Sequence record: OR455461.1
Direction: 5' to 3' (one strand)
DNA length: 64,000 nucleotides
The notes beneath the pieces are model-generated. The model had not been told where the DNA came from. It worked only from the letters and a program-made list of their open reading frames with translations, and ran no database searches. Below are positions 1,168 to 58,120 of the stretch, in pieces; position 1 is the stretch's first letter; each line of letters begins with the position of its first letter. The translations under genes and the position numbers were made by a program.

Positions 1168-3569
1168 TTATTTGAATAAATCCATAATACGTTTATTATT
1201 GTTGTCCATTGGTTTTTGTTGTTGACCAAATATAGAATTACTCATATCATTTCCTTCAATAACACTATTGATACGTTTTATTGAAGTAATATCTTTTCTT
1301 CTAGCTTCTTGTTCTTTTCTGATTCCTTCTGCATTTTCTCCGTTAGATGAGAGTTTAGAACCATATTTAATTTTTACAAATTTATTAATATCCTTTTCAT
1401 AATAATATGCATATAAACAGAATAAATAAGACATCATTAAGTCATCGTGACCTCCCGGTGGATGGTCAATACGTCCTTTAATCATTTGTAAAGATTTTAC
1501 TTCTTGGAAGAGTGCTTTATTATTAATTAAATATGGTTTTTCTTCAACAAGCATAGATAGTATTTCATTTAACATTATATCACGAGATTTTTTAGTTGTA
1601 TCAATACCATATCTACGAGTTTCTTTTTTAACTTTTTCATTTTTACCATATCTAGATACTTCATTAAATAAACCTTTATCTTCTACTTGTTTTTCAGCTA
1701 CACGAGTTTTAAGTGTATAGAATAGATTAGATTCTAAACCATCATAAGTTATCATATGATCAATTACTGTTAAACCTGCATAGTTACGTTCAGGTATTAA
1801 TATAGCGTTAGGTATATAGAAACTAACCAATTCTTTAATTAATTTTCTGAATGTAGGTCCATTAATTACGTTATTTTTAAATGTCATCACTGGTTCCAAA
1901 GTAGCTGGATCCACTACAGTAAATGCTGTATTATCTCGTCCTAAACCACCAGACATATCAATACCAATAAGCCAATTTTTCTCTGTAATATTATCCATAT
2001 ATTTAATCATATTTACATAATAAGTTTTTCCATCAATATTAAATTCAAGAGTATTATATACTTCCTTATTAGCATACATAGATATTTCAGACATTTGCTC
2101 TTCAGAGAATAATGAATCATCAGAACTATAAGCCCATTCCAATAATATTTCACGTTTAACTGCTTCTAAAGAACCAATTTGTCTTTTTTGTTTTGCTAAC
2201 CAATCTTCATCTTTACCTAATTCTTTATATGAATATTCTATATACATGAATTCATTATTTGAATTATCTTCCATGTATTTTTCTAATTTAGAAATTCCTT
2301 CTTCTTCACCATTAATGAAATAATCATATATTTTTTCATTCCATTGAGCTGCTTCATTCATTTGTTGAAAGAAAAATTGCCCATTGTCTTCATCAAGAGT
2401 ACTCAAATTTATTTATTCTTTATAATTATATAAAGTTTAGACTATATCACAATAATTATAATAATTATTATCCATTATTTAGTCGTTGAACATCATTTAG
2501 ATGATGCTGATTAATTTTATAATATTTCAGCAATTAAATAGAAAAGCCCAGTTAATTTTAGGCGTAGTTGTAATTAGAAGTCCATAAGGAGTTCCGTTTC
2601 TTTTAGCAATTGCAGAAGCTGTGGAGTTAGCTGGACGCATGGCCTCAAACATTGTTTGATTATGTTTAATAAATGCCCACTCATCTAGCCAGAATAATGG
2701 CACAGTACCACCTCTCATTTTTCGTTAACTATATGAATTTCATATAGATCAGACTATATCTTAACAATTTCAATGATATTAATATTTAGTCGTTGAACTA
2801 CTATTTTAAGTAGATGCTGATTTATTTAATGATTTTCTCAGCAATTAATTAATTTTATAGCGAGCTAAGGTTATAAATTAATTTTTAAAAATAATTTCCA
2901 TATATGCCATGGAATGATTTAACCCGCTTTATTTGCTTGCTCTTTATTGTTTGGAGGACTGACTGTCTTAATAGTGTTATTATTGGATGCTAATCTAAAT
3001 TCATTTTCAGCATCTTTATCATTCTTATCACCAAAATTTGCCATCACATAATCCGGTAAACATTTTTCTTTAAATAAGTTCTTAAGACGTTTTAAATTCT
3101 CCACTGTATCAGCATAAGCTTTATGTGTAAATAACATTGTATAGTTATTACCTACTAATAACATAATCCATGAATAATAACATACTGCAGAATATGTTTT
3201 ATAGTGCTGACGAGGTAACATTATTGCAGTATCTAAGTTATGCAACATACAGAATGTCATAGCCAAGTTACCTCTATGAAGTTCATACATTACTTTTCCA
3301 CCTGGAACAGGAACTCTAATAACTTCTCTTAAATAAAACCATATATTAAGTTTAGCTTCCCTAATAACACGAGTTTTCATTTCATTATCTAAATCTTCAT
3401 CCCAAGGATCAACACCAATTAATTTCTTATCATATAGAGTTAATGGTAAACCATAATTTTGTATATTATTGTCTTTAAGTTCTTTAGCAACTTTTAAAAA
3501 GCTTATATTATTAGTCTTATAATCGTAATAAACTTTTTTCTTTAATTTTGTTATAGCCATAATCTTCAT
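1168..3569 (-). CDS. terL: Terminase large subunit, 3 exons: join(3569..2922, 2715..2560, 2403..1168), about 679 aa
   Basis: Walker A-like PRQHYKT in exon 1. Junction KAG|RGGTVPLFWLDE restores the GRG/Walker B region. Junction LITTTP|STLD. Exon 3 has nuclease motifs IGIDMSGG..D and GGHDDL. Both junctions are in frame. Confidence 0.92.
2404..2559 (-). mobile_element. Group I intron terL-I2, 156 nt, no ORF
   Basis: P1 exon GCCU/GGGC with U-G at the splice site; P3 UCUAUU/AAUGGA; P4 UGCUG/CAGCA; R element GUUCAACGACUAAA; S element UGAUAUAGUCU; P9 hairpin; terminal G at 2404. Confidence 0.92.
2716..2921 (-). mobile_element. Group I intron terL-I1, 206 nt, no ORF, enlarged L1 loop
   Basis: P1 AGCGGGU/GCUCGCU; P10 ACCUU/GAGGU; P3 AUUAAU/AUUAAU; AAUUGCUG, AAUCAGCA, GUUCAACGACUAAA and AAGAUAUAGUCU core; terminal G at 2716. 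Confidence 0.93.
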
Positions 3570-8297: not shown

Positions 8298-8335
8298 TAA
8301 AAGATTGTTAAATTCAGAAGAATAACATAGAAATA
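8298..8335. promoter_or_regulatory. Divergent pair of AACA-N6-TA late promoters (8298-8309 minus; 8324-8335 plus)
   Basis: AACAATCTTTTA on minus and AACATAGAAATA on plus within an 87-bp divergent spacer. Confidence 0.6.
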
Positions 8336-8376
8336 TTCTTAATTTACAATCAAAATTTGAAAGGAAGTATAAATAA

Positions 8377-9711
8377 ATGTCTAAAGATATTAAAGCTTAC
8401 ATTATTAATGAATCTAATACAACTTCTCAACCAGAAGTAGTTCAAGATAATAATAAATCAGTTAGATTCATTGCTGAGTTACAAGAAGCTGATAGACAAA
8501 ACCGTAATGGTCGTGTTTATCGTAAAGATGTTATCCAAAGTGGTTTAGATAGTCCAGTAGTACAAGAAAAATTAGCAAGAAGAACTTTTTATGGTGAGTT
8601 TTAGGTTAAAATGGCTCACGTTAAATTATATTAATTGCTGAAATCTTATTTAAAGTAATCAGCATCAACTTAATACAAGTTGTTCAACGACTAAATATAT
8701 AACCTAGATGATATAGTCTAATCTTTATTAAAATAATAAAGAATAATAATTTGCAGGTCATCCTTTAAGTGATGAACCTAAACGTCAAATGTATATTGAT
8801 CAACGTAATATTTCTCATATTATCACTAGAACTTGGTGGAATGGTAATAAATTAATGGGAGAAGTAGAAACAGCTCAAACATCAGCTGGTAAGGATATGA
8901 AAGGTTTAATTGGACAAAAATCTGATGTATCTTTCTCAATGCGTGGTTTTAGTAAAATAGAAAGAAAACCTAATGGTGAAGTAGAAGTTACTAAACCTTT
9001 AAGATTAATCTGTTAAATTATAGCAGCTTTATATAGTGATATATAATGAAAAAGAATATTAATTGCTAAGAAGTTTAATTAAGCCAATTAGCATCAACTT
9101 AATACAAGTTGTTCAACGACTAAATATATTCGCTCTTACTAAGAGTATGATATAGTCTCGTCTATATGGAAACCATATAGCTAAGATGTACGTATGACTG
9201 GGTAAAAAATTATTGCTTAGTATAAATAATATTAATTGCTGGAAATCTTTATTAAGATAATCAGCATCGGATTAAATTCCGTTCAACGACTAAATATATT
9301 ACCTAATATAAATTAGGAAGATATAGTCTCGTCTATATGAAAATCATATAGTTAAGATAACGTGTAATTCCATCACATCAAGATTCTTATATCCAAAATA
9401 TAATTTCAGAGAATCATAATAATTACAATACTAGTGATTTACAAATGGTTAATGAATCAATTGATATGTTTTCTAACGGTAAAGTTACAGAATTTTCTCC
9501 TAGAGAAGTTTTAACTTATATTAAAGAAAATTCAGATAATATCAAATATATCGCTGAAGATATGGGATTTGATAAAGCTGATGAATCTAATATCATTTAT
9601 GATAAAGGATCTCAAATAGCTTCAATTAAAGAAAGTAATAAAACTATTAAAGTTTTCTTAGAAGAATCTGTTCTTAATGGACTTGATGATTTCTATAGAA
9701 ACTTTAAATAA
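8377..9711 (+). CDS. Prohead core protease (T4 gp21-like), 4 exons: join(8377..8599, 8754..9013, 9193..9203, 9363..9711), 280 aa
   Basis: NRNGRVY; junction GE-S|GHP restores GExxHP (His); SFSMRG (Ser); LIC|YDWV|VIPSH restores DxVxxPS (Asp). Spliced length 843 nt = 281 codons. Confidence 0.92.
8600..8753 (+). mobile_element. Group I intron pro-I1, 154 nt, no ORF
   Basis: P1 GUGAGU/GCUCAC; P3 UUAUAU/AUAUAA; core AAUUGCUG, AAUCAGCA, GUUCAACGACUAAA, UGAUAUAGUCU; P9 CUUUAUUA/UAAUAAAG; terminal G 8753. Confidence 0.92.
9014..9192 (+). mobile_element. Group I intron pro-I2, 179 nt, no ORF
   Basis: P1 CUGU/GCAG; P10 UUAUA/UAUGA; P3 GAAUAU/AUAUUC; P4 UGCUA/UAGCA (compensatory change relative to the other six); P8 GCUCUU/AAGAGU; terminal G 9192. 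Confidence 0.92.
9204..9362 (+). mobile_element. Group I intron pro-I3, 159 nt, no ORF
   Basis: P1 ACUGGGU/GCUUAGU; P10 AAUUAU/GUAAUU; P3 UAAUAU/AUAUUA; P8 CCUAAU/AUUAGG; terminal G 9362 is the nearby G that restores the frame. Confidence 0.9.
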
Positions 9712-9734
9712 TATGTATGGAAGTGATATAGTTT

Positions 9735-10448
9735 ATGATAACTAATACAGAAGTACTTAATTATATAGAACGTGATACAGGATTTCTCTTTAATGAGTTA
9801 GAACTAAATCCTGATGAGATTATTAAAACAGTAGAAAGATTTACAATTCCTACTTTTAGTAAATTCCATCCTAAACAAGAAAGAATAGTAGTTAAACCTG
9901 AAGATAAAGTAGAAGGAACTCAGAATGTTTATTATATTGATTCACCAAACCCGATAGTTAATATTAATAGAGTGATTGGTGCTAATAACAATATTTCTAA
10001 TTTAACTGGTTATGCTGGGAGTATGAGTCCTTATGCAGGTTTTATGATGGGTTCACCTATTGACTCTCAAATGATGGCAGATTTAATGGCAATCAATTTA
10101 AATCCATCTACATTTAGATATCTTCATCCTAATAAAATAGAGATAATGAATGGATCTGTTATGAGTACAACTAATCTATTAATAATTGCAAATACTTATC
10201 ATGATAAACATTTTGGTTCAATACCAAATAATATGCATGATTACTTTTTAGAATTAGCTTCATATGATGTTCAAATGTCATTATACTCTATGAGAGGTAG
10301 ATTTCAAAATTTACAAACTACTTTTGGTGAATTGAATCTAAATATGGATGATTTAAGAGATGCTAGAGAAAAAAGAAGAGAATTAGTTGAAAAAATGGAA
10401 AATAACTCTATTTATAATTCCAATAGAAAAAAATTATTTTTCGGATAA
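9735..10448 (+). CDS. Putative neck / head-tail adaptor protein
   Basis: Co-transcribed with protease; C-terminal helix pattern loosely like T4 gp13-type neck proteins. Confidence 0.4.
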   Translation: MITNTEVLNYIERDTGFLFNELELNPDEIIKTVERFTIPTFSKFHPKQERIVVKPEDKVEGTQNVYYIDSPNPIVNINRVIGANNNISNLTGYAGSMSPYAGFMMGSPIDSQMMADLMAINLNPSTFRYLHPNKIEIMNGSVMSTTNLLIIANTYHDKHFGSIPNNMHDYFLELASYDVQMSLYSMRGRFQNLQTTFGELNLNMDDLRDAREKRRELVEKMENNSIYNSNRKKLFFG

Positions 10449-11255: not shown

Positions 11256-11924
11256 TTAGCAATAACTAATTGAATTATATTTTTCTATTAATTTGTTAAA
11301 TGTAATCGGACCAACGTCTCCATCTTGTTTAAGATTATTATCACTCTGAAACTGTAATAAAGAACTTAACATAGTTCTATCAAATACATAGTTTTTACTA
11401 TCGTATTTATTAGCAGAATACCCCAAACCTGTCAGTGCGATACCAACTGTATTAACATCATTACCTTTCATATTATCTTCCCTATACATTAATAATCTGT
11501 AATAGCTTCCTTTAAGATTTCTATTATTTGAAATAGATGGTTCTTCAGGTTTATATTTTCTAGGTAAATGCATATCATAGTAATAAGGAAATTTAGGATT
11601 ACCATTATGGAATTTAAGTATAACTTTATCATAAAGGTTAGGTTTTCTTAAAGGTTTATCTAAATCATTATTCATTAATGGTTGACAAATTAAATAATTA
11701 CCTATGTCTACTTGACTTCTTACATCTAGATCTTCTATATTTATTATATTATTAATATTTAGGTTTCTTTTGATATTTCTTGGGGAATCCTGCAATTCAG
11801 TCATAATAAGTTCATACACAAATAGCTTTACTTCATATGTTTCATCGAAATCTGTATTATCTATAACTACAGCTTCAAAGTCTCGACCAAAATCAAATTC
11901 TTTAAACGATTCTTTATATTGCAT
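11256..11924 (-). CDS. Baseplate spike/hub-like protein (gp5-type OB fold) with C-terminal peptidoglycan-binding domain
   Basis: N-term AVVIDNTD...KPNLYDKVILKFHNGNPKFPYY; C-term GNDV...LTGLGY...FQSDNNLKQDGDVGPITFNKL typical of PG_binding_1. Confidence 0.65.
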   Translation of the reverse strand: MQYKESFKEFDFGRDFEAVVIDNTDFDETYEVKLFVYELIMTELQDSPRNIKRNLNINNIINIEDLDVRSQVDIGNYLICQPLMNNDLDKPLRKPNLYDKVILKFHNGNPKFPYYYDMHLPRKYKPEEPSISNNRNLKGSYYRLLMYREDNMKGNDVNTVGIALTGLGYSANKYDSKNYVFDRTMLSSLLQFQSDNNLKQDGDVGPITFNKLIEKYNSISYC

Positions 11925-56455: not shown

Positions 56456-58120
56456 TAGCTTTAATACCTACATTTTTTGATTTAGGGTTATTTAGTAAAT
56501 AAACAGCTATTTGTGAGTCTTTATTAAGCGAGTAAGTTCTATTAAATAATCCATCATTATATGAAATTAATTGATTTACTGGATCTTGGACTTTTAACTG
56601 TTCGTATTGTTCTTCTGAAAATAGTGCTATGATGTTTAAAGTGTCACCATCATACGTTTATCTTAATCTATATAAATATTATCATATAGACGAGACTATA
56701 TCATTACCATTTAAGGTAGAATATATTTAGTCGTTGAACAAATTATATTAATTTGATGCTGATTAATTTAATAATCTTCTCAGCAATTAATATTCTTTTC
56801 TATAAATCTCTCAATTTAAAGCGACTATTATTTAATCGGCCATTTGTATTAACTTCATAGAGATTTTTCTATAAAGATTAGACTATATCAAACTCATATT
56901 AGTGAGTGAATTTATTTAGTCGTTGAACAATCATCTTGATTGATGCTGATTAATTTAATAATCTTCTCAGCAATTAAAATTCTTTTGACATTATATTACT
57001 ATAATGAAAGGCTACCTTTATAACCCATACCAGCAAGTATATTATTACTAATACCTACTACTGATGATTCTATATCTTGAATTATATCTTTAATTTTCAA
57101 TATTTGAACAGAGCTTTCACTAATTGAGGGATTTCTATTTAAAATAACTCTCATTCCATTTTCAGTTTTATCAACTAGTTCTCTCATATATTTATATACT
57201 TTAGGATTAAATGTATCTAATGCTCTGTCTAATATTTCTTCACCTTTAGCTAAAGGAATATTTTCTGTTACATACATTAAATTTGCTAAGATAGGTTTAT
57301 ATACTTCTAAGAAGATAGTGTAATTTAATCTGATTTCATTTAATTTAAGGTCAGGTGCTGGAACAATTACTGAACGTGCAGAGAAACCAACACGACTACC
57401 CATTAGTAATTTACGAATAGTTCCACCTTTACCTTTAATATTCTCATTAATTACACGATCACTAATATTAATACTATCATTCTGAATTTTACTTAATAGA
57501 TTTAATTTTTGTAACTCCACTGAATCATCTGTATAATGTCTATCAAGTTCTTTAATACTATTACTATGTGCAATTAATAAATTATAATCTTTATTAATTT
57601 CAGAATGTCTAAAAGTTTTAGTAGCTTTGTTAACTGTAGCAGGTCTTAATTTAGGACTAAATACAGTTACATAATTTTGGAATAGTAAATCAGATAAATA
57701 CCATTGTACTACTCTATTGTAATCTTTAGTTTTACGTTTATCACGTTTAACTTCTTCTTTAAGAATTTTTAAGAAATTCTTTCTAAATTCAATTAAACCA
57801 ATATAAGAGTTATGATCATCTTCAGGTTCAATTACATTACCATTCTCATCAATAGGTTTTTCAGAACTAATAATTTCTTGGAATCTTTTATTACCAATTA
57901 ATTTTTTAACACGTTCATATCCTAATGGATTTAATATATAATTATTACCTAAATCTACAATAGCTTCATTAGTAATATTATCTGCTTCTGAATCAGGACC
58001 GAAGATTTTTTCACTGAAAATACCATCTTCAGTGAAATCTCCTTTTTTATCTATTGATTCATGATTAGTTACAACTGGAACATTTTCTAAATCCTTTTTC
58101 TTGAGTAAAAATCTAACCAT
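56448..58120 (-). CDS. rpoC: Non-virion RNA polymerase beta' subunit, N-terminal part, 3 exons: join(58120..57023, 56840..56835, 56654..56448), 436 aa
   Basis: DGIFSEKIFG, MGSRVGFSARSVI, LNRNPS. Splicing gives LAGMG|AD|YDGDTLNII, the catalytic DxDGD motif. Close to AR9 nvRNAP beta'N from recall. Confidence 0.93.
56655..56834 (-). mobile_element. Group I intron rpoC-I2, 180 nt, no ORF
   Basis: P1 CGAU/GUCG; P10 AUAAUA/UAUGAU; P3 AGAAUAU/AUAUUCU; conserved core; terminal G 56655. Confidence 0.92.
56841..57022 (-). mobile_element. Group I intron rpoC-I1, 182 nt, no ORF
   Basis: P1 GGGU/GCCU; P2 CAUUAUA-GUAA-UAUAAUG; P3 GAAUUU/AAAUUC; conserved core; terminal G 56841. Confidence 0.92.

Follow-up and report, generated by a model that had tools for sequence, protein, structure and literature searches.

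The prohead protease gene of the Staphylococcus jumbo phage AH12 is very probably interrupted by three small, ORF-less group I introns of a dispersed family, two of which lie only 11 nt apart within the codons of the conserved motif that carries the predicted catalytic Asp (C-Y-D-W-V-V-I-P-S-H). Both of these introns would have to be removed to give the mRNA of an active His-Ser-Asp protease.

The stretch of DNA analysed here (the window) comprises 64,000 nucleotides and corresponds by coordinates to positions 62001-126000 of AH12; window positions 8300-9800, which contain the protease gene, are 100% identical to positions 70300-71800 of OR455461. Across this protease region the phage Machias is 99.7% identical to AH12, and eight other Staphylococcus jumbo phages from the AR9/PBS1-like group carry the gene as well, at very different lengths. 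The allele of phage UFV_DC4 (DC4) is intron-free and encodes 280 aa. In the records of AH12 and LY01 the protease is annotated only as fragments, under the name 'hypothetical protein'.

Structure of the protease gene

Four plus-strand pieces in the ORF listing, with three similar inserts between them, belong to one gene of the gp21/S77 type (8377-9711, plus strand). Its exon junctions were placed by alignment with the intron-free DC4 allele, and its parts are as follows.

8377-8599, plus strand: exon 1, from the ATG to the U before intron 1 (ORF listing and alignment with DC4, GESGHP being present in both phages)
8600-8753, plus strand: intron 1, an ORF-less group I intron of 154 nt in the catalytic-His motif, between G-E-S and G-H-P; absent from DC4
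8754-9013, plus strand: exon 2, with GHP (His) and FSMRG (Ser), ending ...LIC (partial match to PF03420; alignments with 5JBL and DC4)
9014-9192, plus strand: intron 2, a group I intron of 179 nt; its guide consists of the P10 strand at 9018-9022 and the P1 strand GCAG at 9023-9026
9193-9203, plus strand: micro-exon TATGACTGGGT, 11 nt, encoding Tyr-Asp-Trp and the first two bases of a Val codon
9204-9362, plus strand: intron 3, a group I intron of 159 nt without P2; its P1 guide GCUUAGU lies at 9215-9221
9363-9711, plus strand: exon 4, from the third base of the Val codon through VIPSH... to the stop codon (ORF listing and alignment with DC4)

When joined, the four exons form an ORF of 843 nt with a single, terminal stop; its 280 aa equal the length of the DC4 protein, to which the spliced AH12 protease is identical at 260 of 280 positions (93%). 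In all three introns the 5' exon ends in U and the intron in G (U9013 and G9192 for intron 2, U9203, the last base of the micro-exon, and G9362 for intron 3). Without splicing, translation would meet an in-frame stop 3-22 nt into each intron, and intron 2 opens with one, its first three bases being TAA. Precise removal of the introns restores the host gene, as seen from the intron-free alleles of DC4, SA1, MarsHill and S6 and from the 280-aa spliced ORF.

The intron-free DC4 orthologue matches Pfam family PF03420 (Peptidase_S77) with 39.4 bits (cut-off 27, E-value = 6e-10). When the AH12 exons were searched separately, exon 2 alone gave 18.8 bits, and exons 1 and 4 gave no score against Pfam. 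The DC4 protein also aligns with the structure of T4 gp21 (PDB 5JBL), at an E-value of 0.004 that indicates distant similarity. In this alignment His77 and Ser136 (DC4 numbering) fall on the two mutated residues of 5JBL, which correspond to T4 H85 and S140, and Asp163 falls on the Asp of VDAVWGPS. These three residues are invariant in 10 of 10 homologues, whose identity to the DC4 protein is 31-49%; Val165, Ser169 and His170 are invariant too. The T4 enzyme has a three-residue His-Ser-Asp triad, which has been aligned to H77, S153 and D178 of SPN3US gp245 (PMC5694885). An earlier reading of this DNA, made from the sequence only, had assigned the Asp to the triad of a gp21-type protease, and the assignment is supported: given the invariance of Asp163, its alignment with 5JBL and the triad of gp21, the label 'predicted catalytic Asp' is reasonable. 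The His (GHP), Ser (FSMRG) and Asp (YDWV..PS) motifs of the AH12 protein thus all have counterparts at aligned gp21 positions; the phage protease differs from gp21 in a C-terminal extension of about 100 aa, and its gene differs from T4 gene 21, which is not known to contain introns.

Group I identity of the introns

In a focused scan of 1.5 kb, to which the following E-values refer, Rfam model RF00028 matched all three introns over its full length: intron 2 (9004-9180, 45.5 bits, E-value = 5e-10), intron 3 (9194-9351, 41.6 bits, E-value = 8e-9) and intron 1 (32.6 bits, E-value = 4e-6). All three scores fall short of the gathering score of 50 bits, and scans of the whole window with Rfam returned no match, whether the cut-off was the gathering threshold or E <= 0.01. 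The low scores result from the absence of peripheral elements (P2, a long P5, and the P8 and P9 insertions), which is visible as deletions in the alignments.

The common structure was examined in an alignment of 13 members of the family, drawn from the window, LY01 and Madawaska. RNAalifold, unaided, recovered P4, P6, P7 and P9 from it. In a hand-drawn P3-P9 core with the P3/P7 pseudoknot, 97.8% of the cells were paired in the 13 members, against 29-42% in controls with slid partners. Compensatory changes occur in 20 of the 37 pairs, located in P3, P4, P5, P6, P8 and P9, and for each of five measures the observed value was attained in none of 500 shuffles. The elements of a group I core, namely the P3-P9 helices, the P3/P7 pseudoknot and the joining segments J6/7 and J8/7, are therefore all represented. 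A guide G at intron position 10-15 pairs with the final U of the exon in 10 of 10 introns analysed, and P1 comprises 4-7 exon base pairs across these ten. One family member outside the window has a C at position -1.

Under a family covariance model built from this alignment of 13 sequences, intron 1 scores 143 bits and intron 2 185.8 bits, both being training sequences of the model. Intron 1, whose P1 is GUGAGU/GCUCAC, has no P8 hairpin and may for this reason need a protein cofactor. No endonuclease ORF was found in the three protease introns (154-179 nt), the sole ORF being a 30-aa TTG frame at 9063-9155. The protease introns are predicted to be self-splicing, each acting as an independent ribozyme guided by a sequence of its own. 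Intron 2 would use P1 (CUGU/GCAG) to recognise where exon 2 ends and a weak P10 to recognise where the micro-exon begins, and intron 3 would use P1 to recognise the last seven bases of the micro-exon.

The 11-nt micro-exon

At the position of the micro-exon DC4 reads TGC TAT GAT TGG GTA GTA ATT, which fixes the exact position of the 11 nt; the two alleles differ there by a single synonymous change. DC4, SA1, MarsHill and S6 are all intron-free through the Asp-motif site and read LICYDWVVIPSH uninterrupted, with TATGATTGGGT or TATGACTGGGT at the place of the micro-exon. The predicted spliced product joins CUGU, UAUGACUGGGU and UGUAAUU in this order. Because the intron-free alleles read through and the joined exons match the length of the DC4 protein, the 11-nt exon is regarded as real. 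The analysis thus shows what the introns are, where exactly the predicted junctions lie and that the micro-exon is real; the proposal that two back-to-back group I introns flank a true 11-nt exon, Y-D-W-(V), is thus upheld by the Rfam matches on both sides and by the DC4 alignment.

Pairing at the micro-exon and the order of splicing

The two helices drawn in the sequence-only reading are both present. P10 of intron 2 pairs 9193-9197 (UAUGA) with 9018-9022 (UUAUA) over 5 bp, P1 of intron 3 pairs 9197-9203 (ACUGGGU) with 9215-9221 (GCUUAGU) over 7 bp, including a U.G pair at the splice site, and the two overlap by one base, A9197. The P10 at this insertion site covaries between phages, UAUGA/UUAUA in AH12 being replaced by UACGA/UUGUA in LY01 through a double change from U-A to C-G. 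As an isolated duplex, P10 of intron 2 has a free energy of +0.4 kcal/mol, whether formed with the micro-exon or with exon 4, and P1 of intron 3 one of -5.3 to -7.3 kcal/mol. Since UGUAA, with which exon 4 begins, offers the intron 2 guide a partner as good as the micro-exon, P10 cannot select the correct 3' splice site. The strength of P10 was considered as a determinant of 3' splice-site choice or of splicing order, and was rejected on the same value of +0.4 kcal/mol for both partners.

The same reading had gone on to suggest that the overlapping helices may impose a splicing order, and in its strict form this would mean that the order is obligatory, one intron remaining inert until the other has been removed. 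We consider this unlikely. It draws on the fact that A9197 is common to both helices, on the larger overlap at 6-nt exons elsewhere (P10 UACGA and P1 CGAU in LY01; P10 GCC and P1 CGAU in the RNA polymerase beta-prime gene of AH12), and on the consideration that two folded cores of about 160 nt would hardly be able to dock together on an 11-nt segment. However, only a single base is shared on the 11-nt exon, a P10 of +0.4 kcal/mol faces a P1 of -5.3 to -7.3 kcal/mol, and both orders are chemically valid pathways that are workable on paper; a weak P10 is, moreover, generally tolerated by group I introns. With a negligible P10, a guide that fits exon 4 equally well and a stable P1 in intron 3, we see no reason to think that pairing dictates the order. 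Because the same 11 nt serve both ribozymes, steric reasons make it most likely that introns 2 and 3 are spliced successively and not simultaneously. The order would not be fixed by base pairing, and transcription order, if anything, would favour the removal of intron 2 first.

Exon skipping and other explanations

If the micro-exon is skipped, the frame shifts, as had been predicted, and translation ends at codon 180, in a product that lacks the Asp. Such skipping might block capsid maturation. Some exon skipping may nevertheless occur, given the very low stability of P10 and its equal fit to exon 4. A stronger version holds that a hybrid ribozyme, combining the 5' portion of intron 2 with the 3' portion of intron 3, or the use of the distal 3' splice site skips the micro-exon and yields a frameshifted by-product or a brake on the protease, as has been reported for Twort orf142. 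This is conceivable because the P3 and P7 strands are the same in introns 2 and 3, and because UGUAA at the start of exon 4 is as good a partner for the intron 2 guide as the micro-exon. Skipping is also documented for the 23-nt exon of Twort and for engineered tandem Tetrahymena introns (PMC10136302), and about 47% skipping has been reported in phage SIOphi (PMC11878797). But the two introns have different P4, P5, P6, P8 and P9 elements, and a product that stops at codon 180 without the Asp cannot be a functional mRNA, so that we regard this version as improbable.

In the deposited protease of Machias (QQO92457.1; 3 exons, 277 aa) the micro-exon is omitted and the protein reads LICR---VIPSH. 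This annotation amounts to a single intervening sequence of 349 nt, with exon 2 joined near 9361 and the 11 nt counted as intron. Such a junction would remove the invariant Y-D-W and place the 3' splice site after A instead of G; each half of the 349 nt is a complete group I intron in itself. The intron-free alleles contain the 11 nt, and in Madawaska and LY01 an intron lies inside them, both halves still being needed as exon; the single-intron structure can hardly be correct. It is just as implausible that the gene is a decaying pseudogene broken by repeats, with another protein maturing the head, as the fragments called 'hypothetical protein' in AH12 and LY01 might suggest, since removal of the three elements gives a full-length, stop-free ORF 93% identical to the DC4 protein, mass spectrometry has detected the DC4 protein in virions (PMC10638138), the cores of the introns are intact and covary, and the phages are plaque-forming isolates.

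A second micro-exon and other short exons

The arrangement of two adjacent introns around a very short exon recurs on the other strand of the window, in the gene of the RNA polymerase beta-prime subunit, with a still shorter exon.

56841-57022, minus strand: upstream intron, a group I intron of 182 nt of the same family
56835-56840, minus strand: 6-nt exon GCCGAT (Ala-Asp), completing GMG-AD-YDGD in the DxDGD motif
56655-56834, minus strand: downstream intron, a group I intron of 180 nt of the same family (148.7 bits under the family model, of which it is a training sequence)

The intron-free DC4 gene reads GGT GCT GAC TAT GAT GGA GAC at this site, GCTGAC corresponding to the exon. The spliced AH12 beta-prime protein has 436 aa, the same length as in DC4, and its peptide spanning the 6-nt exon is GMGADYDGDTLN. 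In the Machias record the gene is labelled a 'non-viral' RNA polymerase, and its CDS ends at the first intron. Outside the protease gene and the 6-nt case, comparison of AH12 with DC4 revealed further short internal exons.

15 nt, AH12: ADFDG of a second beta-prime-like gene
16 nt, AH12: third beta-prime-like gene, homologue of DC4 67143-68369
18 nt, AH12: homologue of DC4 UFVDC4_00134
24 nt, AH12: RNA polymerase beta subunit gene, homologue of UFVDC4_00067

A dispersed family of small introns

A motif census counted 30 copies of the family in AH12, of 154-206 nt, seven of them in the window. The covariance model found 27 non-overlapping matches in AH12 at E <= 3e-9; the difference of three is accounted for by tandem partners masked by overlapping flanks. 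In the whole DC4 genome the same model found no copy at E <= 1. Core identity among the members ranges from 64 to 94% (mean 79%), and the guides differ at every site. Full-length blastn matches were confined to six phages (Machias, AH12, LY01, PB50, Madawaska and MarsHill), each with 8 to 31 matching places, and the J8/7-P7-P9 segment of a window intron gave short blastn matches in Staphylococcus and Enterococcus myophages of about 91-150 kb. Two further members in the window interrupt the large terminase gene.

2716-2921, minus strand: terminase intron of 206 nt; its junctions fit the DC4 TerL and the joined frame is open
2404-2559, minus strand: terminase intron of 156 nt, of the same family

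The Asp motif is a hotspot of insertion: across the clade, three insertion sites fall within the 11 nt of the micro-exon, and at least five within the two catalytic motifs of the protease. Those in the Asp motif are the following.

Site A, after CUGU: occupied in AH12, Machias and LY01
Site B, after UACGAU: occupied in Madawaska and LY01
Site C, after UGGGU: occupied in AH12 and Machias

In LY01 the introns at A and B leave a protease exon of 6 nt, UACGAU. The His motif has two sites 4 nt apart, one occupied by intron 1 and the other, 4 nt upstream, by a LAGLIDADG-encoding intron in MarsHill and S6; an Rfam scan of the MarsHill LAGLIDADG intron gave no match. The idea that tandem neighbours have diverged, 'orthogonalised' helices that keep them from mispairing was examined and found no support: core identity averages 0.782 over the six tandem pairs and 0.790 over all 435 pairs, and 36% of random sets were at least as low.

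One might go further and view the introns as actively proliferating, MITE-like minimal ribozymes that are retargeted by a change of guide alone, for example through reverse splicing, and that pile onto the catalytic-motif codons of essential genes, where exons of 6-24 nt would force ordered or cooperative splicing. We offer this view tentatively, and its truth appears doubtful. If it were true, there might be a splicing-level checkpoint on the protease and the RNA polymerase, or a protection of these genes in co-infection.

Comparison with known systems

The closest known case is orf142 of the Staphylococcus phage Twort, which, in the account of Landthaler & Shub 1999 given in PMC10136302, has three group I introns and a 23-nt exon that lies between two similar IA2 introns and is subject to skipping. 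Both are late structural genes of Staphylococcus phages with three ORF-less group I introns, of which a related tandem pair surrounds a very short exon, and AH12, with introns 2 and 3 77% identical over the core and an exon of 11 nt, shows the tandem arrangement of the Twort type. The differences are that the 23-nt Twort exon is longer than the 11-nt exon of the AH12 protease and the 6-nt exons of the window's beta-prime gene and of LY01; that the introns here are much smaller (154-184 nt); and that the host gene encodes a prohead protease here and the tail tube in Twort, skipping here destroying the frame. With exons of only 11 and 6 nt, the P10 and P1 strands overlap, unlike in Twort.

In the mitochondrial cox1 of placozoans a 1-nt micro-exon lies between two group IB introns, with RNA-seq support (PMC5436844). 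As in AH12, a second group I intron beside the first makes a micro-exon that holds part of the codon of an essential residue and was missed by the first annotation; in contrast to the phage case, the gene is that of an animal organelle and the intron lineages are unrelated. Because the cox1 exon is shorter than a P1 or a P10 and is still spliced, the phage case is no mechanistic first. The 23S rRNA of Coxiella burnetii has a 34-nt exon between two group I introns, again with exon skipping (PMC10136302). This, too, is a bacterial-type group I tandem with a short exon, but the rRNA gene has no reading frame, the exon is longer and the introns that flank it come from different subgroups.

Korn et al., in their passages on introns and exons, report that the genes for the prohead scaffold/protease, RNA polymerase subunits, TerL, GyrB and DNA polymerase are disrupted by introns in MarsHill, Madawaska, Machias and AR9-like phages (bioRxiv 10.1101/2020.12.14.422802). 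The junctions given in those passages come from protein alignment only, that of TerL is left unresolved there, and the passages make no mention of micro-exons or of a repeated intron family. A search of the searchable literature for micro-exons together with group I introns and bacteriophages returned nothing relevant. The AH12 case adds a further, more extreme phage example to the known tandems of group I introns that enclose a short exon, and does not constitute a novel type of system.

Significance

The findings bear on annotation in the first place. Public records lack the Asp motif of the protease (Machias) or give fragments of the gene (AH12 and LY01), and the Machias beta-prime record is without the DxDGD motif; the exact junctions correct all of these. 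As the seven introns of the 64-kb window were missed by the standard Rfam scan, genomes of the AH12 kind seem to be under-annotated for introns. Where an exon measures only 11 or 6 nt, the P10 of one ribozyme would compete with the P1 of its successor for the same bases, and the 349-nt cassette may serve as a small natural substrate for studying how tandem group I ribozymes avoid exon skipping. Finally, these near-identical phages, with 30 copies of the family in one genome and none in sister genomes, would provide a clean system for following the spread of ORF-less introns.

Copy number and detection of the mini-introns

The mini-intron family is present 30 times in the genome of AH12 (L011-L015 together with the window), over 13 gene clusters, with hosts that include the genes of RNA polymerase subunits, TerL, the prohead protease, NrdE and GyrB, and no copy was found in the genome of the relative DC4 (L016-L021). 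A standard Rfam scan of window positions 1-64000 (gathering threshold or E <= 0.01) reported no introns, although seven are present; Rfam reveals them only if the scan is restricted to a short stretch.

Large terminase and RNA polymerase genes

The large terminase gene carries two mini-introns:

Window 2404-2559, minus strand: mini-intron in the large terminase gene
Window 2716-2921, minus strand: mini-intron in the large terminase gene

The junctions agree with the intron-free DC4 TerL, and the frame is open once the exons are joined. The second site reads CCT in the allele that carries the intron and CCG in DC4; the CCT places a U before the splice site. Reconstruction of this gene was not achieved by the Machias/MarsHill authors, according to their preprint (bioRxiv 10.1101/2020.12.14.422802).

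Very short exons were found in two polymerase genes:

Window 56655-57022, minus strand: two mini-introns around a 6-nt exon, RNA polymerase beta-prime gene
AH12 L011, about 11540-11560, minus strand: 15-nt exon GCTGACTTTGATGGC, encoding ADFDG in a beta-prime-like gene

The 6-nt exon encodes the Ala-Asp of the GADYDGD catalytic loop, and the Machias beta-prime CDS as deposited terminates at the first intron (373 aa versus 436). The intron 3' of the 15-nt exon has its 5' splice site after C instead of U, and its guide, ACCAUCA, places an A opposite this C; the sequence thus suggests that a C.A pair may replace the usual U.G. Counting this 15-nt exon, the other short internal exons in AH12 are of 15, 16, 18 and 24 nt.

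Some cores are reduced: window intron 1 (8600-8753, protease gene) has only six bases at the P8 position, and the LY01 polymerase intron (L010:468-628) ends 10 nt past P7, with the P9 hairpin absent. Both stripped-down cores lie within essential genes, and the phages are viable.

Catalytic motifs of the protease

The intron 1 junction (window 8599/8754) yields GESGHP by the U/...G/ rule (slashes marking splice sites) and DC4 DNA; the deposited Machias and Madawaska proteins have GEAGHP, one residue off. Introns in sister phages are as follows:

MarsHill L004, about 565-1745; also S6 (L006): LAGLIDADG endonuclease-encoding intron, roughly 1.2 kb, after TATGGT
LY01 L005:986-1166: protease intron, site A (after CUGU)
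LY01 L005:1173-1356: protease intron, site B (after UACGAU)

The LAGLIDADG intron interrupts the catalytic-His motif 4 nt upstream of the intron 1 site; it does not resemble the mini-intron family, and an Rfam search with it gave no match. In the Asp motif, a 6-nt exon, TACGAT (Tyr-Asp), remains between the two LY01 introns, and Madawaska has a single intron, at site B only (L002:991-1174), so that across the sister phages three insertion sites lie inside 11 nt.
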